Shown: positions 39,480 to 63,800 of the stretch, one piece after another
Layout of the letters: each line of letters starts with the position of its first letter
How positions within the stretch are numbered: the stretch's first letter is position 1
NCBI GenBank assembly: GCA_025201805.1
Contig: MU619258.1
Span: 62,001-126,000, forward strand
DNA from: Parasitella parasitica NRRL 2501
Lineage: Eukaryota; Fungi; Mucoromycota
Length of the DNA: 64,000 bases
Reading direction: 5' to 3'
Translations under genes and position numbers: made by a program
Notes under the pieces: generated by a model
Told to the model about the DNA's origin: nothing
Database searches by the model: none
Seen by the model: the letters and a program-made list of their open reading frames with translations, nothing else

Positions 39480-39614
39480 TTAAAAAAAAATATCTATCAA
39501 AAGTTTCTGTATTTTTGCATTTTCTTGTTTTTAAACACACAAACACTACTTGTATCAAAAAAAAAAAAAATATCTCTTTTTAACCCTTTAATTTTGATTT
39601 GAAAAAAAAAAAAA

Positions 39615-42600
39615 ATGACATCTTTTCCAAAAGGTTGGTTTTTCATAAAAAACCAAAACAATGGATACGTTTTATCTATTGAAAAATCCACTGCTGGTGA
39701 ATCCATCGTGATTGCAACTATGAAAAGCAAAGATTTTGATTCTCAACTTTGGCAACACGGCGAGGATGATCGTCTCCACAACAAAAAGACTGGGTTTGTC
39801 CTTGACATCCGCAAAGGTAAGTTTAACAACGGCGCTTCAACTACTTTGTTTTACCCCTGGATCTGCCTGTGCTAATGTTTCACCTGTCAAAATGAACTAG
39901 GCCAAGCTAAAGCTGGGTCCGATGTTGTGCAGCAAAACGAATCCGACTCTTCTGAATGCCAGAAATTTGGCGTCTCATCTGATGGTCATATTTATCTGAA
40001 GAAGGATCAAAAGTTGGTTCTGGGCATCAAGGAGTCATTCTTTACTCGTCGTGAAGGTCAACATGTCCATCTTCAAAGTCTTGATAAGAATGTTAAGGAT
40101 AGCAAGGAACAGCGTTGGGATTTCTTTTCGCCCTCTCAGAAGCGCTCTGTTTCCGTCAATAACCCTATAGACAGCTTGAAGCGTACTATAAGCGGTGCCT
40201 CTCTTGGTAGTTTCAGTAGCTCGTCTACCAATACTCATGGTAAAGTGCAAGATAAACTGCACAGTTCCAACGCGTATTAATATTTGAAAGTAGATGATGA
40301 TGGCTGTCTAGACGACTCGCAACACAATCAACTGAGTAACTTCCCTGACACTGAATTCTTTATCAAGTCTGACGCCACTGGCTATTTTGTTGGCGTTGAT
40401 GCTGCTGCTGTGAATAGTCCAGGTGCTCGTCTTTCACTTGAGCCTCTTCGTAAAAACAACTATGAGAGCCAGCTCTGGCATTACGACGTTATTACTGGTC
40501 GTTTGATCAATAAAAATTCTGGCTTCACCCTAAGTGCCGAAGAGATCTCTGACGAATCTCTTGTATGTCAATCTTCAAGCACCAGCGAGAAAGATTTGCC
40601 TGGTCAGTCTTGGAATCTCTCCGGCTCTGGTGAAATCAAATTGAAGCATGAACAGCACAGCTTTGTTCTTGGCTACAAGAAGGATAGCTGGTTTGGGTTG
40701 AATCGCGAAGGTTCTCCTGTTTTACTTCAAAAGCAGACCGACGGAAAAACTCACTCCCACCAGCGTTTTGTTGTTGTTTTGCCTGTTTTCAAAAAGAAGA
40801 CGACCGAGATTGTCAATGTTACTGAACAACAAGGCGTCTTTCCTGAAGGCTACTTTTTCATCAAGAATCAAAAGCACGGCCTTGTCATCTCTGTGCTTGA
40901 AACTGACAAATTGGCTGCTGAAATCATTGCCTCCAACCTGGACACTCGCAACTTTAACCGTCAATTATGGAAGTTCAATGACGGCTTCCTCATAAACAAG
41001 GCATCCAACCTTGTCTTGGATGTCCGTGGAGGTAAATGCCACTATATAGACGCATTGGCAAGTGTTATATTGACACCTACTATTTTGTACAGGCTGCATT
41101 GAAAAGGGCTCTGAGCTTTGCCAATACAAGCAAAAGCAGGAAGGGTTTGAGAACCAACAATGGGGGCTTACTGTTGAGGGTTTCATCCACGCCAAAACTC
41201 ACAAGAACATGGTTCTGGCTATTTCCAACAGAAAGGACACTGATTCCAACGTCTTTTTGACAGATAAAAAGACGCCCGATCATGAAGAGCAGAGATGGAA
41301 CTTTGTACTGCCTGTGTTCAAGCAGAAGTCTAGTAAGTAGGAGCTGCACTAGTAGTATGTATAGCAACTCAACACATCCCACTCTAGCCACTACCACCGA
41401 GACTACCGTGAAGAAATCTGTCAGCTATCACCACTATGCGCAATACCCTAGCGGCTGGTTCTTTATCCGTTCCTTCGTTGGAGGCTCTTCTACCGATGCC
41501 CCTCTTGTTTTGACTGCAGAAAGCAACTCGTCTCACGTTGTTCTTTCCAAGATCAGCAAGCAGGATTGGCAATATCAGCTCTGGATGTACTGGAATGGCG
41601 TTTTGATCAACTTTGCTACTCAATTAGCCATCGATGTAGTCAATGACAGTAAGTTCTGCACCCCTTCCCTCATTCCCCTACCAAATGCCTTCTATAACAT
41701 TTAACACATTTTGCCAACTTGTATAGATATCAACGCTGGTTCTGCTATTAGCCAGGAAGTCCGCAAAGCTGGTGATGTTGGCCAAAGGTGGAGTTTAACA
41801 GTCGATGGCTATCTTGTTCATGGATCGAATCCTTCCTTGACACTTGTTCCCCAGGTTGCCGAAGAGAACACGTACAAGCTCTGCCTCGCAGACCATGCTT
41901 CATCTTCTCAGCAAGACAACCGCTGGGGTCTTTTGTCTCCTGAAGTCAAGATTGAGAACAACATGCAAGTTCTCGTTCGCTGGAGTGTAACTCTTTTGTC
42001 TGAATGGAAAAAATCCACTGAGCAGACGATCCAAAAAGTTGTTCATCGCATTGCTGACTGGCCGCAAGATACCTTCTTTATTAGCGCCCAGGATGGTTTA
42101 GCATTGGCGCCCGAGAAATCGGAAGCCTTTTCTTTCTTGGTTGTCAAAAAACTGGAACTTGGACAAAGCGAACACTTTAAATGGACTTTCCGCAATGGTT
42201 ATGTTGTGCATGTTGCCACAGGCCTAGTTTTGCATGCTTCAGGTAAATTCTGCACATTTTTATAGATTCAATGTTTATTGACATTTGCTTCCCTTATAGA
42301 TGACCTTGTTGGTGGCAGTCAGCTTCAAATTCGCGAAGAGCTCTTGGCCGACTCCAAAACCATTGACCAACGCCAGAAATGGGTCATCAAGACGGATGGT
42401 TCTATCGTCTCTGATCTCAAGACTAACCTTGGTTTTGCATTGATCCAACAAGCCAACCAGTATATGGTTCAACTTGCTTACACAAGCAACACAAGTGAAC
42501 ATTACAGCTGGGGCTTTGTCCGAGGACACTATGAGAACAGATACAGCCAGGTTTACAAGAAGGAAGTTAGCGTTGTAACTCGTACTGAACGTATTTTGTT

Positions 42601-45600
42601 GACTGTACGCACTCAGTGGGGTAAGTAGAGAAGGGATGCCCTGTACTTTATAAACGTTGTTGCTCACCATTTGCTGTATCCATAGCTGCATCCAACGCAA
42701 ACACCAAGTTGGTATCTCACTCTTACGGTGTCTTCCCCGAGAATTGGTTCTACATTCGCTCCAAGGAAGACAAGACGCTTGTTTTGACTGCTCCTAGCCG
42801 TAAAGAGGGTGCCAAGCTGACACTCTCCAAGCTCGATTTCAAGGTTTTCCGCCGTCAGTTATGGCATACGCAGGACAATGGCTGCCTTGTCAACTTGGAT
42901 TCTGATCTCGTCATTGACGTTGCAGGAGGAGCCTTTAATGTGGGCAGTGATATTATCCAGTGGCACGAGAAATACCTGCGCAGACACCGCAAGAATCAAC
43001 TCTGGGGTCTCTCTGTAGATGGGCATCTGCATCCCAAGTCTCGTCCTGGACTGGTTCTCGGAGCCAAGGGAAACAAGGCCTTTGATGGCGTTCAAATCCA
43101 ATTGCACGCCCGTGGTGCGTTGGATCTTAACTATCAACAATGGACATTCGCCACTCCAATCTTTGGCAGAACTATTTCTGGTGTAAAGGGAGTATCCGCT
43201 GCTGGCGTGTTGGAGCAGAACGATGATTCTGTCTTTATTGACAGCGTTGACGAAGCTTCATTTGAGACATCCACCACGGATCGCTACGAGCGCAAGACCA
43301 AGCTGACGGTTGTCCGTCGCTGGGGTCTGTTCCCGGAAGGAGGCTTCTTTATTCGTGCTGGCTATGGTGATGAGCATCTTGCACTCACTGTTGAAAAGAG
43401 ATCTCGCACTGGCGAAGATGGCGGTGTCGAGCATGAAGTGACATTGAGGCCCATCAATTTTAAAGAGTATCAGTGGCATTTCTGGGCTTATCAAGAGGGC
43501 CATCTTATCAATCTTCAGACCGGCTTTGCTTTAGATGCTCGCACCACCAAGGGTCTTTTGGTTGAGGATGGTCTTCGCAACCCACTTTTTGTCCGCGAAA
43601 AATCCATGTCGGAAACGCAGTTCTGGTCTCTCACTGCTGAGGGCGAGATTTTCTTGCGCTCTGACCAACACCTTGTCGTTGGTGTTTCCAACTCTCGCCG
43701 AGTATCTGTCTCTGGCGCTCAAGTAGGTGCTCGTGAACTGCGTGTACGCAAGTTCTTGAACGACCAGGGTCAACAAGAGACTTCCATCAAATCTGAAAAG
43801 TGGTTGAGATGGCTGTTCTCCAAACCCGTCTACCGCAAGACTACTACTTCTACGACAACCAGCACTACAACAACTTTGGTCACTGCAGAGTCTGCAAGCT
43901 CTACCGCCGCTGCGGGCGAAATTGTTGAAGGCTTTGAGGACCAAAAGCTAAGTGTCAAACAAAAGGAGGAATCTGCTGATGATTACACCACCGATGACGA
44001 CAGCGACAGCGACAGCAATGATTCTGACAGTGACAACGAAGTGGAGACAAGCAAAAAGCTTAATCTCATTGGCAACTTGGGCATCGCTACTGCAGGTGCT
44101 ACCATCTTGGCTGGAGCTGGTGGCATGATCACTGATGTGATTACCTCTGCCCCCCAAAGCATTTCGCCTGCCGTCGTGGGAAAGAAAATGAAGCAGGGAT
44201 CAGGCATCAAGCAATCTTTGGCTAAAAAGACATCTTACAAGTCTCTCAGGAACGAGCGCAAGGATTCCTTCCACGCCAGTGCTGATTATGTGCCCACTGG
44301 TTTTGAAAAGGTTGTTCGCTACAAGACACATCAGCAGCCCAACTTTCCAACTGCCGGTTACTTTATGATCAAGAGTCATCTCCATGGCTACGTATTTGAC
44401 ATTGCCAACGGTGAGGCCAAGGATGGTGCCTTTGTAGTGCTTTCCCCCATCAGATCAGTCGACTTTGCAAGCCAATTGTGGTCTTACAAAGATGGCCGTG
44501 TGTTCAATCTCAAGGGCCATAACCTTGTTTTGGACGCCTCTATGACTGATACCATTACAGCCGGCGAGAGACTGGTTATCTCGGTTCAGAAATCGTCTTT
44601 GGGATTGTCTGATCAATACTGGGAATTTGGCACTGAGGGCGGCTTGATTTGCTTAAAGTCTAAGCGCAATTTGGTGCTTGGTGTCAAGGAGCTCAACCGC
44701 GTTACAGATCAAAATGCGTCGGTCGATGTCTATCTTCAAGAAGAAAAGTCCCATCTCAAGAGCAACTTTGGTCGTCCTGAGCAACGTTGGGAAATCAAGG
44801 TTCCTGCTTTGATTCCTGTTGAGCAAACTACAAACACCACGTCTGAATCCAAATATACCATTATTGAGGGCGGTAAGATCAGTGCCATCTCCAGCTCGGT
44901 GTCTGCTATCATTGCATTCAAATGGTTAAAGGAAACCTTCCACCACAAGGTTACTGCCAACAACCAATGGCCCACCTCTCAAAACTGGTTCTTTATTCGT
45001 ATCGGTAATGAAAATGCCTTTTTGTCTTCCGGAAGCGCTGACTCTAGCGAGGTCAAATTTGTTTCTCTTGGTCAAAACGAGGATCACAAGCAATTCTTGT
45101 GGGTGTATGTCAATGGGTACTTGGTAAATTACAAGTACATGTTACGCCTTGTCTATGACAAGCAATGTAAGTGTGTTTTAGGGTGTAAAAATAGAAGGCG
45201 TATAAGTTAACCTATCCTAATTAGCCAACAAGCTTTTGCTTTCCAATGATACTAAAACTCTTGATCAAGCTTTCTGTGTCTCCAGCCAAGGCAACTTGTC
45301 TGTGAAGATCCAGTCTGAATCCACCTTCTTTACTGTTGCTTCTGCACACTCGGAGCACCATTCGTACGAACTTGTATCTTCGACTGTTGAAAACACGACT
45401 GAAGCTGAGCACTCGCTTCAATTGCACGTTCCTGTATTCTCTGACGTTGAGGTTGAAAAGGAATCCAAGATTGCTCTTTCTACAGTAACGTCTTGGATCG
45501 AGTCTTCTCGTAAGAACTCTTCCACTACCACCACCTCTACCACCACAACTACTACTACCAAGGTATCTCAGTTCTATGGTGTATTCCCTGCTGGCACCTG

Positions 45601-48600
45601 GTTCTTCATCAAGGCTCAATCCAAGGAGGGAGACAGCCTTGTCCTTGCTGTCAAGGACTCTTCTTCCAAATCTGGAGCATCCTTGATTTTAAAGAAGTTG
45701 AACTTTAAGGACTACCGTAGTCAATTGTGGACTTTCCGCAACGGTCTGCTAATCAACTATGGTAGCAAGCTTGTGATTGATGTGAATGGCGAGATTAACG
45801 AGTTCTCCAAATTGATTCAATCTGCTGAGGCAGGTGTTAGCACTCAAAAATGGTCTCTTACTTGCGATGGTTATATTCAATTGGACAGTTACTCTCAATA
45901 TACATTCGGCTATACTCAAGCTGACAAGATTGCTGAGGGCATCGAGGTCGCTCTTGTTGCAGCCAAGTCGTATGAGGAGTCATCCACTACCCAATCCATC
46001 GCTTGGAGATTCTCTGTGCCAGTCTTTGGCAAAACAGCAGCCTCTGCTGCATCCACCGCCATCACTACAACCACCACCACTACCACAATTACGACGACTA
46101 TCTCGTCTATCGAGAGAATTACTGCTTGTATTGAGCAAGGTGCTCTTATTGAGAGTGTCGAGGAAGCTGATATCAAGGTTGAGGACATTTCTGTAAAAAA
46201 GAACAATGCTGTCAACAATGCAACTTCTTCCGCAACCGCCGCTGTTGTCAAGGAAAAGCATCATGGATTCCAAGATGTCCTTACTAGTGTTGGTATTGCA
46301 GTTACTGCTGGTGTTGTAGCCGTTGGCGCTGTTGAAGGAGCCTCCAAGATTGCTGAAAAGATCTCTGAGCACAAAGAAGAGAAAAAGACTGAGCAAAAGA
46401 AGGCCGAATCTGCCTCTTCCGCTACTGCTGTCGTCAAGCAAGATCAAAAGCAAGAAGCTTCCTCCACCACCGCATCTGCTGTTACTGATAAAAACAAGGC
46501 CACTGAAACCATTGTTGTTCGTCGCTCTCAGCGTACATCGATTCAAATTATTGAGGAATCTCGTGTCATCATTCGTGCTTGGAAGATTGTCTTTAGCCAG
46601 CGTGTTCATCATTGCAAGACAAAGGAAGAGCTCGTCCAGACTATTGAGGAATCTCGCGAAGAGTTGTACAGACGCTTGGACGAACATCTGCGTGTGCATG
46701 CTTCCGTAGACCATCTGATTTCTGGTTCTGTTCCTGAATGGCATGTCTCTATTCAACAGGTCAAGGAACTGTACAGAGCTCGTGTTTTTGACAGATTCTT
46801 GGATCGTTTGAGCCACAAAGAGATTGCTGACGTTTCCAGTCTTGATTTTGACTCTGTCCTGTCATCTGCTACTCAGGAGGTCGAGAATCATTACAGTCTT
46901 GTCATTGAAAACCAAACCAAGGTCCTTTCCGAGTCAAGCAACTCCACTGTCCAAAAGACCCAACATTGCCAAGATGTATCCATCCAAGAAAATGTTCTTG
47001 TTACTATTGATACCATCAAGGTCACTGTTCGTTATTGGTTTATCGGCTTGTACGAAACTATTTCCGCTGCTAGAAACAAGGGCTCTTCTGAAGAGGAAAT
47101 CAAGGTTATCATTGAAAATTCTCGCAAGGAACTTTCCAATGAGCTGGCCAGTATCAAGACTTCTGCTACAAGTCATATCGAGAACTCTTCTTCCACTCTT
47201 TTGACTTCCAAGCAGACATCAATCAGCAACACCATCCAAACAGCCATATCTCAAACAGAGAGCATTGTAAACACTCAAATCAGCACTGTCTGTTCTGAGA
47301 AAAAGTACCTTCATACCGAGGAACATTGGTTGGATGTCACTCGTGTCACCGAAGAAACTCTTTCTGGTCAATTAAAGGTGTATCAAACTGCCATCACTCA
47401 GGAGATCTCAGAGGTTCAAAAGACTGAGATTGACAAGTCGGATCAGGCTGAAATTTCTGTTGTTTTGGATGAAAAAATGGTCGCTGTTGCTCAACAGACG
47501 GTTGCCAACAAGCTCACTGAAACCCAAATCAAGCTCTCCAGCTGGTACACTGAAGTTACGCAACAAATTTCTTGGCTTTTGGAAGAAAGCAAGACGTCTT
47601 CTTCTACTACTACTACTACGTCGTCTGAAGAGATTGTCAAGCAGGACGCACTGGCTATTGTTGACGCTGCTCAAGTCGAGATCAATACTCGTATCGAGGA
47701 GACCAAGCTTGTCGTTCGTGCTTACTATGCTCATTTGACCTACTTGAGCTGGGCTGAGCGCCGTCGCATTGAGTACGCTTTGGACAACATCAAGGCATCT
47801 CTGACTGCTAGCATCACTCAGTTCAAAAAGTCAATTGACAAGAGTCAGGTAACCAAGGAGGACATCGTTCGCTACTCTAGCTATTCGTTCGGTGCCACGG
47901 CTTCTCGCATTGTTATGACTGACTTGCAAACCATCGTTGTCAAGGTTACCAATGTCAAGGAAACCACAACTGTTGTGAATAAGTCTGATGAAATTCAAGC
48001 CGAAAAAACCAAGGTTGCTCTTGCTGAAACTGTCATCAAGGACAAGGTCACTGAAGTTACCAAGACGACTGCTGAACAGGTTGAGGTTGCCAAGTCAAGC
48101 AAAGACGAGGTTGCCAAGAAGACCGAATCTTCCAAGGTTGATCAAGTCAAGAAGGCTGAGAAAGTCAATATTGATCAGCAAACCAAGATTGTCGACAAGG
48201 TTGAATCTGAAGTGGAGCAAACCAAGGTCAGCAAGGTTGATAACAAGCAGGCTTCAAGCAGCGTCGCTGTTGTTGATAGCCAAAAATCATCTGAAAGTGG
48301 TCATGGTAAAGCGGCTGTTGTTTCAACTGCTGTTATTGGAGCTGCTGCCGCTGCTATAGCTGGTGCTGCCATTATGCATCATCATGAAGCAAAGGCTGAA
48401 TCTAAGACTGATGTTGCTGCCAAGGTACCTGTTGCTACCGCTCCTGTCATTGAGCAGCCAGCCAAGGATACTGTTGTTGTTGGTGGTGGTAACAAGTCTG
48501 AAGTAATTCATGTCGACAACCAAACCTCAGCTTCATCAACTACTGCTACCTCAGCTGTGACCAAGCAAGAAAAATCTGAGACTCTTATTGTTGTTTATGA

Positions 48601-51600
48601 TCAAGTGCAAGTCATTGTTCAAGAATGGATTACCACATTGAATAAGCGTGTGTATGAATGTGCTCAAAAGAAGACGAGCACTACTCAACAAGAGATTGAT
48701 ACTATCGTTTATGAATCGCAACAGCAGCTTATCCTGGAAATTGAAAAGGCCAAGCGCAACACAACAGCTGTAATCGGCACATCTCAAACGTCCTTCCACG
48801 ACACTCTGTCTTGGGTTAGAAGCACTGTCTGGAAACAAGCTGTTGAAGTCAAACACATTGGTTATGAAATTGCTTCATCTACTGAAACCAGCACTACTCA
48901 TTTCGAAGAGAAGCTGGAGACATTGAAACAGACTACCTTGCAAAAGGTAGATGTAGAGATTCAAAAATCAAAGAAATCTGCTTCTGTTATTCATGTCGTT
49001 GGCCATGAACACGCTGCCGTCATTGCTGCTGGTAAGAAGTTTGAAGGTGTCGACTACTCCAAGTCATCTTGTGGTGGGTCTATCGAGAAGACAAAGGTTA
49101 CTGTCGGTATCCTCATCGAAGATACTCGTGTCACTGTCCAGCGACTTTTGAGAGACCTCACCTTCTCCATCACTGAACGCCGTAAGCAGGGTGGCGAGAA
49201 CGTGCAAGCTGACATTGATGTCATTGTCAAGACGCATCGCGAGGAGATTAGTGCTTACATTCTCAAATCCAAGACTGAATTTGAGCAAAGAATCACTTGT
49301 GTTCACCAATCTGCAAGCACTACTGCTTCTACCGCCGCCGACACCACCACCACCACGGCTACTGAAGCATCATCTTCTAGTGTTGATGTCGAAATAACCA
49401 ACGAGACCATCAAGAAGGTGCACTCAACCTTGGAGCAAATCCAAGAGAGTGTTTTTGTTCAAGTAACCAAAGTGGAGCAAGTGACTACATCGACAACTAT
49501 TACATCTGAAGTAGAGTATGATGAAAAGTTGACTACCATCACCCACGAAGCTTGCCAAAAGCTGGATGCTACATTGGCTGTGTCAGAGACGGTTATTGGC
49601 CATCATATTGAGGTGATTGCTGAATCGTCAGCTACCAAGCAGCAACAATCGTCAAGCAGCACTACTGACAAGACCGAGACAAAGGAGTCTAACAGTGTTT
49701 CTTTGGGTGTCGAGTATGGCCTTCTTGTTGTTTCTGAAACAACCAAGAAAGTGTCTAGTCAAATCTCTGCTCTGATCGAACAAGTACACCACCGTATTAC
49801 TGTAGGATCAGAGTCTCTTGAAACCGATATTCATGGCTACGCAACCAATTCTGACAAGGAACTGGATCTCATCTTTGAGGAGGCCAAGTCAAAGATTTCT
49901 TATGAGCTGTCCATGGTTGCATCGCACGAAAAGGTAGAAGAGGAGCATTTTATTGAATACCTTGAATCTATCCGTACATCGGCAAAGACGCGTATCAGTC
50001 AAATCCAAACTGTGGCCACTGATCACAAGGAGGAATCCAAGACTGTGTCCGAGAAGCTTCTTCAAATTGCAGAGGAATCTCGTCATGAGGTTACTGCTCA
50101 TTACGAATCTGTCAAGCAATCTGTAACCAAAAAGACTGAAAAAGCATCTCAAGTCGTGCATGGATCAGTTGGTCATGAAAGCTCTGCTGCTACTCAAGTT
50201 GTTGTGTCTCATACTGAGGAGCAAAAGAAACAACAAGAGCAAAAGAAGCAAGAGGAGCACAAGTCTTCTACTGATCTCGCCAAAAAGGTGCTCGTTGGTT
50301 CTGCCGCTGTTGCTGCAGGCACCGCCATTGCTGTTGAGGTAGCCAAGAAGCTGAACGAGCACAAGGAAAAGACGGAAAAGATTGAGCACACCGAGAAAGA
50401 AACCGCTGTTGTAGTGGAAGACGTCAAGGTTCAATTCAACAAGTGGATCTCTACACTCACTGAAACTGTCGTTACTCAGTCCAAGCAATCGCAAGTCTCA
50501 ACTGAGGAGATCTCCATTACCATTGAGAAATCCAAGGCCGAGTTCCTCGAGGTCATCAAGAAGGCAAAGTCCAGCCAAGTGATTACCGAAAAGCACCAAC
50601 ATGAGGTCTTGACTTGGATAGAAGAAACCGCTGTTGCTCAAGCATCTCGTATTCAAGAGATTGCTGTGCACTCATCCACCTCTTCTGCCATTGATATTGA
50701 ATCAAAGCTTCAAGTCATCAAGATCTCCACCAGTCAAGAAGTTGACATTGCTTTGGAAAAGTGCAAGAGCACCAAGTCTGCCGTGTCTGGGTATGTTGGT
50801 GTCACTGTCGAGCAGTTGAAGCAGAAGGAGGCTGCCCTGTTGGATATTCGCAGCGAGCTCGTAATTGTCGTTCAAGATGCCCGATCATCTTTGGTCACCT
50901 TCTTTGAAAAGTTTAGTAAATCCGTCGTCTCTCGTCTTGAGCAAGGCGGTGATAACATTGAGAAGGACCTTGCCATCTTGATTGCCAACACTCGCAAGGA
51001 GCTGTCGGTTTACGTCGAGAGTGTCAAGTCAACTGCTACCAAGCGATTGTCTGCTCTGGAAACCAAATCCTCCACTACTGTCATCTCCACTGCCGCTCTT
51101 TCCGGCATTGCTACTGCTGAAATCATTGCCGTCCTAAAGTCTAGTGAACAGCTGCTCGAGCAAAAGATTAACCGCGTGCATTCTAGTGTTTGGTACTTGG
51201 AGAAGAACCAGGACGTGACCAAGATTGTGGAGACCATCACCTCGATTCAGACTGAAACTACTGTCGAGATTACTGAAAAGGTGGAGAGCTCTCATTATGG
51301 ATTTGTCACTGCTATCAATGATCACCACAAATCAGGCCATGTCTCTACTGATGTCAGCAAGCACACGACCACTCAAACAGAGCAGCACGAAGCTGCACTC
51401 AAGACATCACTGTCTGTTCAGGAAGTCAAGATCACTATTCGCGAGTGGCTGCGTACTCTTGCTGAAAAGGTCTCTGTTTGTTCTCAAAAGGGCGGCTCTT
51501 CCGAAGAGATTGACGTTATTATCAAGAAAGAAAATGAAATCATTTTCGAATATCTTGATCAATCTGTCACCAAGATAACTGAATCTGTAAAGGCTGAGGA

Positions 51601-54600
51601 GAGCATCAAGTATCTCCACACCACTGTGCAGCAAGTCAAATCTACCATTACAAAGACCAGCGCTGAAATCATGGTTATTGGTGTTGAAGCTGCTACTTCT
51701 ACGTCTCACTCTTACGGTGGTTTTGACAAGATGACTTCGGTCATCACTCAGCACGAGCATCAGATTAGTGAAGCTCTTGTTGTATACGAGTCCAATGTTT
51801 CAAAGCAAACAGTCGAAAGCACCAAACAACAACAACAAAGCACATCCAACAACACCGCCGCTGTTGTCACCAAGAAGGATACCTATACCGTCGTAGCTGT
51901 CGAGTATATCCTGACCACTGTCAATACGTGGATGGAAGAGCTTATGGTTGAAGTTTCTGAATGTGCCAAGGTCGAGCACAATGTTCAAATTGCTACCAAG
52001 ATGATCAACAGCATCGTTGCGGAATACAGAGAGTATATTAACACTGAATTCTCAATGATATCTGAAAGGGTTCAAAGCTCCAAGGCTGATGCTACTGCCA
52101 AGCAAGAGTTGATCAACATTCTTGAATGGACTCGTGGTGTCATTCTCCAAAGCTCTACTCAAGTCCAAGCTATTGGCATCAACTGTGCTAGCTCTTTCAG
52201 TGCTACTGGCGGTATTGAGCAGATGAAGCCTCTTGTCAATGCTTCTTGGGACCAAGTCAAACTGACCGTTGGTCGCTGCAACAAGACGATCAAGATTGGC
52301 GTTGAGCGTTCTTCTGCACACTCTGAAAAGAAGAAAGTGGTAAGTGTTGTTTACATTCTACATGTATGTCGTCGTTGATGACTAACAACTTTTTTTTGCT
52401 CTTTGCAGAAATCTGAATGTCAAAAGCAGGAGATCAAGAAGAAGGCTGAATGCATTGCTGCCGAAAAGAAGAAGAAGGAAGAAGCTTGTGCAAAGAAGAA
52501 CAGTAAGGCCAAGCGCACTGATTCTGGTTCTGATTCTTCGGAAACTGATTCTGGCTCTGATACCGAGGACGATTGTGACAAGAACAAGAACAAGAACAAG
52601 AAGAAGGAAAAGAAGGAGAAGAGCAAGTCCAAGGCAGACTGTAGTAAAAAGGCCAAAAAGTCGACTACAGGCAAGAAATCACAAAAGTCTCCTGATTCTG
52701 ACAGCAGCGACAGTTCTGCATCTGACAGCGACGATAGCGCCAACAAGAAGGGCAAGAAATCCTCCCTTGACAAAAAGAAGATTGCCGTTGGCATTATTGC
52801 TGGCGGTGCTACTGCTGGTGCCATCATCAAAGCAAAGCACGATGATTCAGAATCTGACTCTGACTCTGACTCTGACTCTCACTCTGACTCTGACTCTGAT
52901 AGCAGCAAAAAGGCTACCACTGTCATTGACAAGAAAAAGCTTACCACCGGTGAATCTACCCTGGATGTCACTGTCATTGTCCGCGAATGGTACGAAAAAC
53001 TCATAGTTGAGGTGTCTTCTCGTTCCAAGAAGGGCGGATCCAGTGCCAGTGCTGATATTGAAGTCATTGTTCAAAAGGCTACCAAGAGCATCTCTGAAAC
53101 CCTTCGCATCATCAGCGCCAATGCGCACAAGTCTGTTAGCGACAAGACCACTGTAACACAGTACCAAGCTTCCATTGAGTGGGCCAAGAATCTCGTCATT
53201 CAAAGCACCTACACCATCAAGGCTATTGGTATCAACACTGCTGCTTCGGCCTCGTCCAAGACTGGTGGCATTGAGCAAATGCGCCCCATTGCTGTCTCTA
53301 TTCAGGAGCAAGTCAACGTTGAAATACGTCGTTATAAGCTTGTCGTTCAAAAGACTGAGGAGGTTCAAAAGAAGGAAAACACTGCAGTCTCTGTTATCGA
53401 GCACAAGGAAAACAGCGAAAAGATATGCACGGGTCGCCAGTCTGCTGTCAATCGCAAGGATTACTGTGAGAAGCTCGAAAAGCACGTCTCTGAGGTTGTC
53501 GCTGAATCCAAGGTTGTCATTGTGTCCTGGTTTGCACAGCTTATTCGTGAGGTATCTATTCGTGTCCATCAAGGCGGCTCCAACATTGACCAAGATGTTG
53601 CTGCATTGATTGAGAAATCCAAGCTTGAGCTTACAAGCACTATTGAGCGTACCAAGAACAAATTCACTGCTTCAATCGAAGTCTATGAAAAGGACAAGAC
53701 CTTTGCATTGGTCGAATATCACATTCAGGAGAGCCTCAAGACTGTTCAAGCTACTGTTGATTCCAAGATTGTGCAGGTTCAAGAGATTGTCACCAAGCAT
53801 CATTCTGAATCTGAGGTTACTGAGAAGCTTTCTGTTGTTCTGGAATCTTCCAAGCTCAACATCACTGAAACTCTGGAGGCTACCCATACTCAATCTGTCA
53901 CTGTGATCAAGCAGGAAACAACGCAAACGGAATCCACTGTCAAGATTATCGACACTGTTGATACTGTCAAGACAGCCGTGGCTCACTGGCACGCCAAGCT
54001 GACAGAGGAGATTTATGCTATCAGCATTGACACCACAATCACAAACAAGGAACAGAAGATTTCTACGTTAATTGAAGAAGCTACTGTGGAAATTCAACGT
54101 GTTACTGTAGAGGCCAAGTCAAAGGTAACCCAAGATTGCAGTTCTGTCAAGAAAATCAGCAAGACCAAGGAGCAGGAGCTTTTGGCCACTATTGACTATG
54201 TGCATGAGACCTTCTCTACTGATGTCCAAAAGATTCAGCAAGTGAGTGTCGAGGCCGTCAACAAGTCTGAGACCACCAACATCAAGGAAACCATCTCTGC
54301 TGCCATCCATGCCTCCCATGAAAAGATTGACACTGCTTTGACTCGCACCACTGCCACTGTCATTGGTGTTGCTACTGCGGCCATTGGTGCTCATGCTGTT
54401 AGCAAGCAAGAAAAGAAGCAGGAAGGAAGCAAATCTTCCCATGCTGGGCTTTCTGTGGATGTCGACGAAAATGTCACTGTAATTTCAAAATGGTTTGAGC
54501 TGTTTACCAAGAGAGTGTCTGGATCTGTGCTCCACGGTGAAGGTGATGTGGTTCAGAACGTCACTGCTGTTACAGAGCATGCGGAACAAGAAATCACCGA

Positions 54601-57600
54601 GATCATTTCCACTGCTCGCAACGACTTTGTCAAGCGCTTAACGCTTCAAAACTTGGATCAAGAGTCTTACAACTATGCTTGCAAGCACTATGAGGAAAGC
54701 CTCGAGTCTGTCCGTGTCTCTATTGTTACTGAAATTGTCGAGGTCAAGAAGGTTGCAATCCATGCCCACACTAGTGGCAATGTGCACGAGTTGGAAACCA
54801 AATTGACCAAGCTGACTGAAACTTCCAATGAGCGCATCAAGGTTGTTATGGGCTCTTCTGTAGTCATTAGCCACAAGGATCAGTCTGGCAGCGCAAGCTC
54901 CTCGTCTGGCAAGAAGGCTGAAGCTGTTGTCCAGATCGAAGTCAAGGATTCTGACGTTGTTGTTGGTAAGCAAGATATTGACTTTGGCCGTAAGGAATCA
55001 AGCGTTACTGTTACTCATGAACAAGAAAAGACCAAGAAGTCTGAAAAGGGTATGTGCAAACTAGCACAAACACTGTCTCATGACACTGAAATACTAACTT
55101 TTTTTTTTGACATGTAGCTGAAGAAAAGAAAAAGGACTCCAACATTGACAAGATTGTAGCTGGAACGTTAGCCATCGGTGCTGCTGCAGGTGCTGCCGTT
55201 CTGATTCATAAAAAGAACGAAAAGGAGGAGGCTGCTGCTGCTGAAAAGCTCAAGAAGCAGCAGGAAACCCATGCCGTTCAAAACCTTAGATATGACTCTG
55301 GCATCGCCACGATTGAAAGCGTCAACATCTCCATCTCTACTTGGTTTACTTGTTTAATCCAAAAGGTGTCTTCTGCTTCCAGAGCCGGCGCCTCGTCCAA
55401 GAAGATTACGACAATTGTTGAAGAGTCAAGAACTGAGCTCACCCAAATCATTGAACACGCCAAGGTAACTGGTTCCAAGTACTGTGCATCTGCCAGCGAT
55501 GAGCAACAACTCGTCAGCAAGATTGAATGGGCTTCGTCCGTTGCCCACAACCAAGCTGTTCAAATTCAACAAATTGGCATCAACGCATCCGGTGGCAAGG
55601 CTGACATGACCGGCCAAATGCAAGCCTTGGCTACTGCATCTTATCATCAAATTGAGGTTACTCTTGAGCAGCTCAAGACGTCTGTTACCTTCCATCAAAA
55701 GATAAACAAGATCAACAATACCAAGACACATACTACTACTGGTTCCAGTGAAAAGGCCTCTGCTGTCGAGAAGCCTGTTTGTGGAAAGATGGAAACATCT
55801 GTGGACAAGACCAAGGTTGCCTACACTGTCATTCAAGAGACCCGCACTACCACGATGGCCTTGTTTGTATCTCTTTCTGAGCGTATTGTCACTCGCATTC
55901 GCCAAGGTGGATCCAACGTTCAAGAGGACGTCAACAAGATGATTGCATCGAGTGAGCAAGAGATATCCAAGATCTTTGCCCAGGCCAAGTCGACCTCTTC
56001 GACCTCGTCGTCGTCATCGTCGTCTTCATCCAAGATTGACAAGAAGACTCGCATTGAAATCGAGGAAGCTCTTGCGTCTGTCCACAAGACTGTGCAAGAA
56101 GAAATCACTCAAGTCAAGGTTGTTACTACCGAGGTTGTTTCCTCCGAGACTACCGACACTAAGATTGCTGTTGACAAGGTGCTGCAAGTGAGCAAGGCTT
56201 CGCAGAGCAAGATTGAAACTACTTTTACAAGTGTTTCTGAAGGCATTGCTGCAAGTCGTAAGTCCTACAAAGCAGCAGCTGATCGTATTTTTGTGCTAAT
56301 CTCTATTTTTTTTTTCATCTAGTTATCATCGTTTCCCAAACTGCTCAACAAGCAACCGAGACTGTCCAAGGCTGGTTCTCTGATCTCAAGAACAAGATTG
56401 ATAAGCTTCTCGAGGCCAGCGACTGCTCTGAAGAGGAAACTCAGCAAAAGATCAACGTAATTGTTGCCGAAGCTGAAGCAGAGATGAAGACAAAGATCGA
56501 GAAGCTTCAGCAAACGACCACTACAACTACGACATCTACCAAAAAGACCTCTTCTACCACTCAAGTTACAACTGACCACCATCTCGACATCTTCTTTGGT
56601 AACATCAAGTCCTCTGTCCAGAGTCAATTGGATGTTGTCAAGACCGCTGTCCAAGACACTAGCAAGACTGACAAGTCCAAGATTATGTCTGCTATTGAAA
56701 CCAGCGAGAACAAGTTGAAGCAGGAGGTCGAAAACCACTACCAAGCTGTTGAAAGCATCACTACGGTCGAGCACATTACTGGCTCAAAGCAGCAAGTTGC
56801 TACTCAAGTAGAAGGGCAAGATCGCCATGACTCTTACAAGGACACCATTGTTAAAACTGCTGTTGGATCTGCTGCAGTCGCCGCAGCTGCTGCTATCGCC
56901 ATTGATTACCACAAAAAGAGCCAACAGGCTGAAACGACTGCGGTTCAAGTAGTCAAACAGTCTTCTATTCAGGACGTTCAAGTACAAATTGATACCTGGT
57001 TTACTAGCCTGTCTCAAAAGATCACTGCATGCACCAAGAAGGGAGGTAGCAATGTATCTGTCCAAGTTGAAAACATTGTCAAGGAGGCCCAAGCTGAACT
57101 TGAGGTTACTATCAACGAGGCCAAATCTCAACACACCACTACCGAGACTTATACTTCCGAGTCCAGCCGCACGTTCACCAGTACTCTTGAATGGATCAAG
57201 GTCACTGCCTATAGTCAATCTTCCCAGATCACCCAGATCGTCAGCCAAAGCTCTTCAAGCTCCATTGATTTGACCACACAGATCGAGAACCATGTGTCTG
57301 CTACCAAGCAACAGGTTGATTCTGCACTGGAGGTCCATTACAAGAAGGCTACAAGCACTGTTGTCGCTATTGATCAATCAAAGAAAACACAGATTGTTGG
57401 CCAAAAGAAACAAGACACTGCGGTCGAAAACGTTGTGCAAGTTGTCAAGGAGTCTCGCCAGCAAACTCAAAAGCGTTTCAGCCTCGAAACCACTGTGATT
57501 GTTCAGGAAAGCAAGACTCACATCACCAACTGGCTTGTTCTTTTGTTGGAAAATGTAACCAGCATCATTCATGGAAACTCTGAAACCATTCGCAAGGACA

Positions 57601-58838
57601 TCTTTGCTAGACTCGATGTGGCCGAAAAGGACTTGGATGTCTTTATCAAGCAAACCAAGGACAAGTTCTTGCTCACCAGCAAGACTTCTGCCACTAGCCA
57701 TGTTGAGACAGAAACGCAAACCCTGATCGTCAACTCTGTGAAGCAGACCTTGGATTGCATTGACAGTATCAAAGCTACACTCCTTGTTCAGATCGCTGTT
57801 CTTCGCGAGGTCATCAACCGCATTGAAGTTGAAGACATCGATGTCATTACCACGAGACTTGAAGCAGTTATCACCCGCACGCAAAAGCGTGTTCATCACA
57901 CTCTTGAAATTGGCGTTGATCTGGCCATCTCCTCTGCCTTTGAAGGAAAGGTTGTCACCTGGTCTGAAACCTGTCATGTCCCTGCATCATTCAAGGATGT
58001 TCGCGTGATTGCATTTGATGTACTGGGCACAGTTGCAAACTTCCGCAAGAACCTTCATCAAGTCTGGAAGCAGATCATTACTCCCAAGAACGACGTTGTT
58101 CTCTCTGGATTAGACTTTAACGTCTTTGTCCGGGAATGGTACGGCGCTTACATTGAAATCAAGAGAGAAAACTTTGTCAAGCAGCGCCCTGTTTCTGACG
58201 ATATTACTCTTCACGAGTCGCTTGTTCATAGTCTGAAGCGCTATTACCTCAAGGATTCTCTTTCCGAAGCAGAAGCGGAGCAATTGTGTGCTGCCTGGAG
58301 AAGTATTGGCGTATACGACGATGCTTCCATCGGAATCCGTCGCCTCAAGAACCAAGCCAGTGCCAAGTACGCTACTATCGCCATCTCTGATACTTTGTCT
58401 ACTCGTTCCTTGATCGACCTGGCTCAAAGCAATTGTCTCTGCTGGCATGGTCAGTTTACTGCGGAAATGTTTGCATCTCAAACCGCTTCTGGTGCTACTG
58501 CATCTCAGTCTGTCATCAAGGGCACTATCGAATTGCTTGGCCTCGAACGTGCTAGTCAATTGGCTGTTGTTTCATCAAGCACTGAACTCGTAGCTGCTGC
58601 AAAGAAGGAAGGCTGCCATACTGTCTTGGTTGAGCGCGAGGAATGTTATGCTAGCTCTGCTCAAAAGGAAGCTGTGTCTGTTACTGACGTCGATATCAAG
58701 GTCGATGGCTTGGATGTCTTTGGAGAGAGTGTTCAATCTTTCTTGGAGCATGAATCTATGGTTCAAGTCTGGAATGAAAAGGGCGCTCCCTCTGCTCCCC
58801 GTGTCCTTGTTCAACAATTGAAAGGATCTTTTGATTAA
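39615..58838 (+). CDS. Giant protein (about 6,170 aa), probable Gellin: 10 ricin-B-like beta-trefoils + about 19 helical repeats + degenerate HAD-like domain. Exons: 39615-39816, 39901-40239, 40294-41031, 41093-41332, 41388-41648, 41727-42242, 42300-42620, 42686-45166, 45225-52339, 52409-55049, 55118-56257, 56323-58838
   Basis: All 11 introns are GT-AG with matching phases; exon sum is 18510 nt = 6170 codons. Ten units start with (F/W/Y)P.x.(W/Y/F)FFI(K/R) and contain QLW/QxW motifs. No signal peptide. Ten beta-trefoil domains in a very large Mucoromycota protein is the described Gellin architecture; A versus B is not resolved. Confidence 0.85.
52853..52900 (+). repeat. (TCTGAC)n hexamer repeat encoding SDSDSD in a Lys/Ser/Asp-rich linker
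   Basis: About 8 copies seen directly. Confidence 0.9.
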
Positions 58839-60829: not shown

Positions 60830-63800
60830 TTAATCCAAAAGATCAAGAGAAGGTAATGGTTGGGGAGGCGCTATAGGGTTTTGAGTGACAACGCCATTGG
60901 GAGTAGCAGCAGCAGCAGCAGCAGGAACGTATATATGATTCATCAACGCTTCGAGGTAGTTCTCTGCAAAAGACGACATGTAAAATTCATGTTCAGAGCT
61001 ATGTGCAGACACAAAATTGTGAGCCAGTTCATGACAGATGGTCATGAACCAGTATATCAGAGCATCTTTTCTTTTACTTGCTTGTTGACTCTTTTCGGTA
61101 GTATCATGCAGAGCTAGATAATATCGCAGATTCATAAACAAGCTACCGCTAGAATTAAAGGCAATGGCGGGACCCTCGCTATCATAGAATATTTGGATGC
61201 TTGCCAGTTTGAGTCCAAAAACTTGCGCCAGCTCGGTGAGAATGCTATTGAATCGTGCCATGGCTTGGCCATATTGCTCCAGCACATCGTCTGGTTGAAT
61301 GCTACGATGCACAAAGAACTCCATGCCCATGACATTGCCTACATAGCTCAAATCTTGACACGAGGTAGAATCACAGTAGGTAGACGACTCATTGACTTGG
61401 TTGATCCGAGGCGGCGAAAAGACGTCTTTCCCAGCGTATGGTTTACATGAGTGAATAGCTCGCTTGAGGTTCTGTTGGATGTTGGCCGTATAGTTGGGAG
61501 TGATTGTTGCATCAGATCTAGGGAGTTTTGGCTTGTTTACAAGGCTTGCATCATTGATTTGCTTTGAAACATCATTAGGCACAGATGGCGAGGATGTCAA
61601 AGAAGAAGGCGGATGAGAGGGTGGTGTTTTCCAAGCCCCCAATATCTTGTTCATGAATCCGGAAGATCTCCCGCTTCTGGCTTGTTGACGCTGCTGCTCG
61701 GCTGCTAATTCAATCTGCTTTTTGAGTTCTTCCTCTTCAGAAAAAACCGCTTTTTCAACCTCTTTTCCTGGTTGTTTGGTCTTGGGATAATCTTCGTGCA
61801 GGAGCTTTGTAATCACATTTTGTACATGATTGCTGTGTTGCTGAGAAAGCAACTGTCGAATGTAAGCTGTCTGACAATCGCCAAACACTTCTTTGACTTG
61901 GCTCGTATAGGAATCAAGATCTTTGGTAGAGATGGGCTTTGGCATGTCGTGCGGAGGAGATGGATTTGCAGTGGATTTGTTGCTGTCATAGTTGGATCCA
62001 GAGGGCGGCTGAGGAAGAGGAGGAGAAGGTGTCTTGTCTATCTGCTTTTTAATGTTCAATATTCGATCAACAGGGACGCCTTTGCGACGCAAATTGTACA
62101 AGGTGGTAGTCAAATAGCGCTCCACCACAATGGCATCGTTGAAACGAACGCGAGCAAAGATCAAGGCGCACAAAGAGTTGGCAACGTCATAGAAATCAAT
62201 GTCGTTTGAGTCGGATATGTAGATTTGAAAGTTGGTTCGATCAGCACAAGAGGTAGTGGGCTGGACGTTCTTTTCGTTGGTATATTTAAACGTGCGATTG
62301 ATCTTCAAATCTTTGACTTGAATAACCTTGAGATGCTGCATTACATACTTTTCATCATGCAATAGTTCCTTCCTTCTTCGATGATCGTCGTTCATCATTT
62401 GATATATAATGATCGGCGTACGCTCAAAGATCATGTCTGTGATTTTCTTGGTTGTCTTGGAAACGCCAATATTAGTAGCGTAAGAGTAGGCTTCCCTTAC
62501 TTGGCTGCCGTACACTGTTAGTGATTGTGATCAAGAAATACTATACGAATCTCTTACCTTTGGAGCGTTCTACTGCCTAGACTTGCGTAAAATTCTTCCA
62601 GCATAGGTTCCAAAGGTGCTGACAACGGACTAAAGATTTGCTGAGCCATGGTATCATTGTTAATAAAGATATCTGCAGCCTTGGCGAGTCTGTATTGTAC
62701 AAATTCATCTTCGGCGGCCTCGTCTGTTTCTTTTTCTTTTTCTTCTTCTCCATTATTGTCCTGCTTTTCCTTGCGCTGTCGTTGCTCTGTCAAGGTCGTC
62801 CGTTTGATGCCGACCAAAAAAGGCTTCGTTTTCATGTCACTCAACAATTGTCTGTTTGATTTGATTGAAGAAAATTGGCATGCAATTTGACGCAATGCTT
62901 CGAGGTAGCGTTCTCCCCCGCTGCTCAAGTCCCAGAAACGCTGTGGATCCTTGACGATCATAGCAGCTAATTCCACTGTAGTGGGCTCATCCTTGACACC
63001 GCAAGAACGCAAAAATGAATTAGATCGAGAGCCAAAACTGACATAAACAAACAAATCCTTGTAAAAGCTCGTTGAGCCTTCTGACTCAAAGTAAACCTGT
63101 GCAGGCTGGTACAATTTGACAGATTCATTCTTTTCAACTGGAATAAAGGCAAGTTGTCGTAGTGTTTGCCATTGAGCATGAGAAAATTCGCCCATCCGAC
63201 TTGCCATGTACTCGAACACTTTACGCGCCTTTTCATGGCCTACTTGCAGCTTTTCTACAAAGGCGGCAACTAGTTGATCGGCAGTAGGGTTTTCTCGAAC
63301 ACAAAGCCTGTCTCGAACGTTGATCAAGTCTGAATGGAGCACCTGAAATCCTAACAACTGTACGTCAGGATTAGAAAAACAATCCTTGGGAGCTGCATAG
63401 GTTTTGCCGTCTGCACAGGGCAAGAATTTGATCTGAATGGTATTGACATTGTAGGAATCCTTGTAATCCTGATACTTTTCAATGAGGTAGGACAAGGCGC
63501 GCCTTTGGATGGCTACTCTTTCAGGCGTTGTCTTGGAATCAGGAGCCGCGAGCAATAGCAAGGATGCCAACGGTGGCGTTGTATTCAGGCCAAGTTTTCC
63601 TAGAAATTTAGCCTCATCACTGGCTGGCTTCCAGCGAGGCATGGCTGTCCAGTATATTGTTGGCAGCTTCAAATCACGGATGATATCTGTAGGTGCAAAT
63701 AGATCTCCTGCGCGATACCGTTTGTATATCTTTTTGGTTTGTTTCTCCATGGTAGGTTTGCCATCAGAGTGCATGCTGATCTCCTTGAGACGTGGCTCCT

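Follow-up and report, generated by a model that had tools for sequence, protein, structure and literature searches.

Gellin, a Mucorales protein, gels the protoplasm at wounds (Nguyen et al. 2021, Curr Biol 31:271, cited in PMC10873517, PMC12712441 and PMC10023807). In excerpts from this literature it stands alone among the wound-gelation proteins of aseptate fungi in having been described at the molecular level, and it is put forward as a model for flow-responsive biomaterials; a review (PMC10873517) reports that it unfolds under shear and traps organelles. The excerpts of the three citing papers deal with trefoils, shear unfolding and organelle trapping, and do not mention the helical repeat that is described here in the C-terminal part of a Gellin-like protein. 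This repeat is encoded on contig MU619258.1 of Parasitella parasitica NRRL 2501 (assembly GCA_025201805.1), within the 64,000-nucleotide stretch at positions 62,001 to 126,000 of the forward strand ("the window", whose numbering is used throughout unless another contig is named). According to the abstract of its original description, Gellin is a giant protein specific to Mucoromycota whose defining feature is a set of ten related trefoils. It reportedly gels under shear, and protoplasm bleeds unchecked when its function is lost. Other described systems resemble the repeat in design. The talin rod, the α-catenin M region and vinculin share with it tandem up-and-down four-helix bundles of ∼120–160 amino acids (aa) in a long cytoplasmic protein; theirs unfold at piconewton forces and expose cryptic sites. 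The ApoE N-terminal bundle and apolipophorin III are closed, soluble bundles of amphipathic helices that open at a lipid surface.

An initial annotation of the window, made from the sequence alone, had proposed ∼19 copies of a repeat of 120–150 aa at 46530–57930. The extent, copy number and unit size all hold: four exons of one giant gene on the + strand encode 19 alignable units of 119–158 aa at 46547–57917. A hidden Markov model (HMM) seeded from ten motif matches was iterated on the exon translations, all searches being run exon by exon without a spliced full-length protein, and converged on a ∼73-aa N-terminal half that occurs in 20 significant copies (E 1e-9 to 1e-24), all within 46547–57749. 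When each copy was left out of the profile and compared with 200 shuffles of its own residues, 18 of the 20 scored 18.8–60 bits against shuffle maxima of 6.3–13.7 bits (for unit 2, 48.8 versus 9.3). The two marginal copies begin at 47516 (9.0 bits, shuffle maximum 12) and at 53720. The latter corresponds to the second half of unit 12, which also matches the first-half profile; unit 3, which starts at 47516, reaches E 9e-25 as a whole with a profile that includes unit 3 itself. Aligned from each core to the next, 19 copies can be matched over all four helices, and the statistical alignability named as a check in the initial annotation is thereby established.

Within each unit a Gly-Gly turn connects helices 1 and 2, a Ser/Thr-rich loop that varies in length connects helices 2 and 3, and a further turn connects helices 3 and 4; hydrophobic columns recur at the 3–4-residue spacing of amphipathic helices. 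The consensus V.V.I..W...L...V, Gly-Gly turn, I..I reproduces the first-half motif originally read from the sequence. A second-half motif, L/I-x-W...Q..QI..IG-IN as taken from the unit alignment, had been assigned to several units and is present in units 4, 7, 10, 11, 15 and 18. The short, flexible linkers between units (22–52 aa) are rich in T, S, E and K as first described, and also in V and Q. To see whether the unit could be a duplicated helical hairpin, the first unit halves were aligned with the second by hhalign; the alignment was in register with a probability of 13.7%, and the first-half profile gives weak matches ∼75 aa downstream of many units. We find it very hard to credit that the array is no domain repeat and merely reflects plain coiled coil, disorder or composition. 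The sequence is indeed Ser/Thr/Glu/Lys-rich, and a protein of an unclassified protist (P0065) matches by composition alone through a 25-aa coiled-coil-like repeat; this explanation is nevertheless contradicted by leave-one-out scores far above those of shuffles, by AlphaFold2 models with turns at fixed positions and four helices of 20–45 residues at pLDDT up to 95, and by the orthology of units between genera (see below). A repeat of 119–158-aa units at 46547–57917 is confirmed.

The gene that carries the array extends on the + strand from ∼39.6 to 58.8 kb as long open stretches connected by short GT...AG introns; because the NCBI orthologue models are single proteins of 4,805–6,419 aa, it is read here as one giant gene. 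A jackhmmer search from one trefoil gave 12 matches at 39603–45961 that merge across introns into ten domains, and Pfam Ricin_B_lectin matches these upstream trefoils. The protein is ∼6,000 aa long, with the ten β-trefoils at its front and the bundle chain forming the C-terminal ∼60%. Like Gellin, it is giant, carries ten related β-trefoils and has matches restricted to Mucorales, and we identify it as a probable Gellin by this architecture, which is what links it to the published Gellin sequences; no record named Gellin was found in the databases searched. The features of the gene, with the evidence for each in parentheses, are as follows; the A and B unit types and the hydrophobic segments are treated below.

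46547–46906, +, unit 1, divergent, retained in the paralogue, whose unit C56:57716 matches it best (HMM, alignment)
47003–47386, +, unit 2, kept in the paralogue (HMM, leave-one-out, alignment)
47516–47920, +, unit 3, divergent, N-terminal half marginal alone, kept in the paralogue (leave-one-out, whole-unit profile)
48593–48973, +, unit 4, A-type, after hydrophobic segment 2 (leave-one-out, alignment, type grouping)
49112–49585, +, unit 5, B-type with Gly-Gly turn, helices 2 and 3 separated by a long Ser/Thr insert (leave-one-out, alignment)
49727–50116, +, unit 6, B-type (leave-one-out, alignment, type grouping)
50411–50767, +, unit 7, A-type, after hydrophobic segment 3 (alignment; four helices in the three-unit AlphaFold2 model)
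50867–51298, +, unit 8, B-type, elongated bundle (alignment, three-unit AlphaFold2 model)
51413–51790, +, unit 9, A-like (alignment, three-unit AlphaFold2 model)
51896–52285, +, unit 10, A-type, ends just before the intron at 52340–52408 (alignment, splice scan)
52961–53338, +, unit 11, A-type, after hydrophobic segment 4, modelled singly (AlphaFold2)
53495–53887, +, unit 12, B-type, first-half profile matches both halves (HMM, leave-one-out, alignment)
53954–54352, +, unit 13 (leave-one-out, alignment)
54461–54862, +, unit 14, B-type, after hydrophobic segment 5 (leave-one-out, alignment)
55309–55677, +, unit 15, A-type, after hydrophobic segment 6 (leave-one-out, alignment)
55828–56238, +, unit 16, B-type, ends just before the intron at 56258–56322 (leave-one-out, alignment, splice scan)
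56340–56753, +, unit 17 (leave-one-out, alignment)
56964–57344, +, unit 18, A-type, after hydrophobic segment 7 (leave-one-out, alignment)
57498–57917, +, unit 19, last unit, followed by the HAD-like end, present in the paralogue too (leave-one-out, alignment)
46277–46333, +, Gly/Ala-rich hydrophobic segment 1
48311–48376, +, hydrophobic segment 2
50288–50335, +, hydrophobic segment 3, 82% identity to orthologues
52781–52828, +, hydrophobic segment 4
54353–54400, +, hydrophobic segment 5
55153–55206, +, hydrophobic segment 6
56859–56903, +, hydrophobic segment 7
52340–52408, +, intron in the rod, GTAAGT...CAG, 69 nt (splice-site and reading-frame scan)
45167–45224, 55050–55117 and 56258–56322, +, further introns (splice-site and reading-frame scan)
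39603–45961, +, ten ricin-B-like β-trefoil domains that precede the rod in this gene (Pfam Ricin_B_lectin, jackhmmer)

Between units 10 and 11, a ∼180-aa low-complexity stretch (52409–52960), charged and Lys/Glu/Cys-rich and then Ser/Asp-rich with SDSDSD runs, is the longest non-bundle spacer of the rod. The C-terminal domain at 57990–58835 gives a weak Pfam match to HAD hydrolases (E 0.085, 13.7 bits versus a cut-off of 26.4).

AlphaFold2 predicts that the units fold as up-and-down four-helix bundles, four of them having been modelled. Unit 11, aligned with the 18 paralogous units only, was predicted as a four-helix bundle with pLDDT 95 and pTM 0.87 (helices at residues 3–24, 29–53, 55–58 [short], 62–95 and 104–123). 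A second model, covering hydrophobic segment 3 and units 7–9 (50267–51790) with an alignment of 12 orthologues, has four helices per unit at pLDDT ∼80–95 by 10-residue block and an overall pTM of 0.54. One inter-unit linker falls to pLDDT 24–43, and the hydrophobic segment (pLDDT 44–63) is modelled as a helix running on into helix 1 of unit 7. Because the bundles are predicted with confidence and their mutual arrangement is not, the chain probably resembles a string of beads more than it does a stiff rod.

The initial annotation had likened the repeat to talin-rod or apolipoprotein bundles and had called for models of single repeats and structure searches; the models support the four-helix fold. 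Foldseek returned no PDB match at E < 0.2 (TM-score to ApoE ∼0.3). An exhaustive structural aligner gave Z 14–15.6 to designed four-helix bundles, the best being the unit 8 region (model residues 193–359; Z 15.6, rmsd 2.9 Å over 163 residues), and Z 9–11 to the talin rod, the force-sensing region of αN-catenin, vinculin, chemoreceptor four-helix sensor domains and others. Individual VIA Z values were 10.8 for talin 8vdo, 10.8 for αN-catenin 5xfl, 10.3 for talin R11R12 and 9.6 for the vinculin head, with 111–118 residues aligned to proteins of this group; ApoE bundles were also among the structure matches. Because Z below ∼13 is common for helical bundles with this aligner, the predicted fold appears to be nothing more specific than an up-and-down four-helix bundle, and nothing in these matches speaks for kinship to talin. 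No Pfam talin, vinculin or catenin model matched at E ≤ 1 in any of the 19 units or at E ≤ 0.1 in the exons. The repeat further differs from these proteins in having no sequence similarity to them, long, disordered linkers, hydrophobic Gly/Ala segments along the chain and Val/Ile/Thr-rich, Leu-poor cores. The spectrin repeat, a three-helix unit of ∼106 aa with continuous helices, was rejected as a candidate on the basis of the four helices per unit, the low-confidence non-helical linkers and the lack of any Pfam Spectrin match.

No Pfam model reaches threshold on any exon or on any of the 19 units, in keeping with the original statement that no named domain was recognised. The commonest sub-threshold family is Apolipoprotein (PF01442), found in three of 19 units with a best E of 4.6e-4, and orthologue P0014 scores 24.6 bits against a gathering score of 90. 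The best PDB sequence matches of the repeat profile are ApoE N-terminal domains, aligned in register over helix 1-turn-helix 2, at E 0.002–0.01 overall and 1.7 per domain. Leads from the ESM Atlas (MACPF and others) were of low recognition and not credible. These matches, the ApoE bundles among the structure matches and the hydrophobic segments interspersed among the bundles would fit an apolipoprotein-like mode of action, in which the bundles open on a lipid surface, without force, and directly form a coat on organelle membranes or lipid droplets or a bridge between them. We regard this as unlikely: all matches lie far below threshold, the TM-score to ApoE is low, and a paralogue swaps the middle bundles for a non-helical-looking repeat (see below). 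The exchangeable apolipoproteins also carry proline-punctuated 11/22-residue repeats, whereas here the period is the four-helix unit of 119–158 aa and Pro makes up 0.12% of residues; the repeat is, moreover, intracellular, tandem and fungal. What is shared is the amphipathic four-helix bundle and a weak, recurrent profile similarity, which suggests similarity of amphipathic design rather than family membership.

The 2,506 unit residues comprise 31% Val+Ile+Thr, 23.5% Ser+Thr and 5.9% Leu, with three Pro, an unusual composition for helices. By a crude Chou-Fasman comparison, mean β propensity is 1.04 in the units versus 1.03 in the trefoils, and unit helix propensity is 1.06. Because the helices are Val/Ile/Thr-rich, Leu-poor and Pro-free and match the trefoils in β propensity, the bundles could conceivably be metamorphic, with kinetically trapped helices that would be pulled open by wound flow and re-assemble as cross-β sheets. 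If this somewhat improbable scheme were true, the rod, and not the trefoils alone, would provide the bulk of the gel, the hydrophobic segments would staple organelles, and the protein would be a natural flow-triggered α-to-β switch material.

A word-based search with the largest exon found 15 close orthologues at 56–85% identity, the nearest proteins being from Mucor, Rhizopus and Gilbertella. When a profile of the 19 trimmed units was run against 1.84 billion representative proteins (E ≤ 0.001), 68 clusters were found, of which 30 were looked up; 11 of these are unnamed metagenomic fragments and 19 carry an organism name, and the other 38 stand outside the taxonomic count. The named clusters are all from Mucorales (Rhizopus, Gilbertella, Apophysomyces, Radiomyces, Spinellus, Cunninghamella, Hesseltinella, Backusella, Phycomyces and Pilobolus) but one, the protist protein P0065, which was rejected as a member because its coiled-coil-like repeat is an artefact of composition. 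The HMM search proposed in the initial annotation as a test of Mucoromycota restriction thus gives a still narrower range among the clusters named. A further candidate relative, P0076, had no unit-length match and was discarded. The orthologues carry 7–20 units, the full-length ones 15–20 near-complete units and that of Hesseltinella seven. Taken together, these comparisons indicate that the repeat is a sequence family that is new and confined to Mucorales, has no Pfam entry, is predicted to adopt a common type of fold and forms part of a known protein. Of two orthologues, P0010 and P0002, one is a close orthologue filed in NCBI as Paenibacillus sp. (a metagenome-assembled genome) and the other, at 79% identity, is filed as Rhizopus arrhizus, although Rhizopus stolonifer is ∼73% identical over exon 3; both labels are probably due to fungal contamination or mislabelled contigs.

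The history of the array, which lies beyond what the initial annotation had described, can be read from one-to-one orthologues across Mucorales families, from a super-repeat of two unit types with hydrophobic segments, and from a paralogue with a different middle repeat. In Gilbertella, 19 of 19 units have a reciprocal-best, collinear partner, as do nearly all units in Apophysomyces, Radiomyces and Spinellus, and the orthologue score is typically 2–5 times the highest score obtained with a different unit. NCBI places the four genera in the families Choanephoraceae, Mucoraceae, Radiomycetaceae and Phycomycetaceae. One-to-one, collinear units in four other genera imply that the array was complete before these genera diverged; it appears to be ancient, with each unit retained individually and no homogenisation among them. 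Cunninghamella and Hesseltinella have differing unit numbers and no one-to-one unit pattern. Over the modelled stretch, identity among close orthologues is 82% for hydrophobic segment 3, 72–74% for the units and 52–69% for the linkers.

Two main unit types were distinguished, A (units 4, 7, 9, 10, 11, 15 and 18) and B (units 5, 6, 8, 12, 14 and 16). All A-type units except unit 9 have the second-half motif, and B-type units mostly have the Gly-Gly turn. Seven Gly/Ala-rich hydrophobic segments of 15–22 residues interrupt the chain, leaving between one and four bundles in each group, and five of the seven are followed within 35–95 residues by an A-type and then a B-type unit. This order indicates that the array grew by duplication of blocks consisting of a hydrophobic segment and two or three bundles. 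An eighth such segment lies upstream at 44065–44130, and all eight are mostly followed by His/Lys. The segments resemble glycine-zipper or prion-like AGAAAAGA stretches and are putatively membrane-binding.

A second giant Gellin-like gene with trefoils is present in the same genome on contig 56 (51756–71899 of that contig, loci L011–L015). It has counterparts of units 1, 2, 3 and 19 and at least four similar Gly/Ala hydrophobic segments, and the HAD-like C-terminal domain is also kept in similar form. Its middle consists of a different, Val/Gly/Ser/Thr/Asp-rich repeat of ∼40–60 aa, with several stretches that read N. Units 1–3 and 19, being common to both genes, are probably ancestral, and the central fifteen bundles may either have expanded in the gene studied here or have been replaced in the paralogue. 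The different middle suggests that the middle bundles act as spacer or bulk rather than as a specific binding site. A rival reading, which we doubt, is that of a passive spacer, the bundles being inert, soluble beads that set length, spacing or solubility or hide the hydrophobic segments, and neither unfold nor bind. The exchange of the central bundles in the paralogue is in its favour, as are the differing unit numbers and missing one-to-one orthology in Cunninghamella and Hesseltinella and the fact that, over the aligned units, no surface motif is conserved beyond the core pattern, the Trp and the Gly-Gly turn. On the other hand, the identity of each unit is kept in at least four other genera, at 72–74% among close orthologues, and such unit-by-unit constraint exceeds the needs of mere filler. 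The results agree with a passive spacer as well as with force-free, apolipoprotein-like lipid binding.

The reading we favour, with moderate confidence and by analogy, is that the protein is a long, extensible, multivalent, membrane-anchored and flow-loaded tether whose bundles open. The initial annotation had likewise supposed that the bundles could unfold under shear and serve as a force sensor or cross-linker. The hydrophobic segments would hold organelle membranes at several points, and the bundle chain would add contour length and drag, so that wound outflow would put the molecule under tension, as length does for von Willebrand factor. That protein is likewise a very long molecule in which flow tension opens domains and starts a plug; it differs in having unrelated domains, in being extracellular and in forming multimers through disulfide bonds. 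Weakly packed bundles with Val/Ile/Thr cores would open under tension like those of talin and α-catenin, from which, with vinculin, the proposed mode of force-opening is borrowed. The folded chain of nineteen ∼5-nm bundles and linkers would span ∼100–200 nm and its ∼3,700 residues, once unfolded, more than 1 micrometre; the opened strands would lengthen the molecule more than 10-fold and expose β-prone sequence, and these strands could join the trefoils in a sheet-like gel that traps organelles.

Several considerations weigh against this tether scheme. Everything past the predicted fold is inference, and the structure matches are at a level that is common among helical bundles. High AlphaFold2 confidence points to well-packed bundles and not obviously to weak ones, and the hydrophobic segments are short for a membrane-binding role that is itself putative. 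The elements that unfold under shear are reportedly, from the abstract of the original Gellin description, the β-trefoils, and the rod may be passive. The primary paper may also already describe or test the rod region (Nguyen et al. 2021).

The published accounts, in the portions consulted, explain Gellin by its trefoils alone, whereas ∼60% of the protein described here is made up of a separate, well-defined domain family. The present results provide exact domain boundaries for the 19 bundles, a profile for their annotation, and a paralogue with a different middle for comparison.

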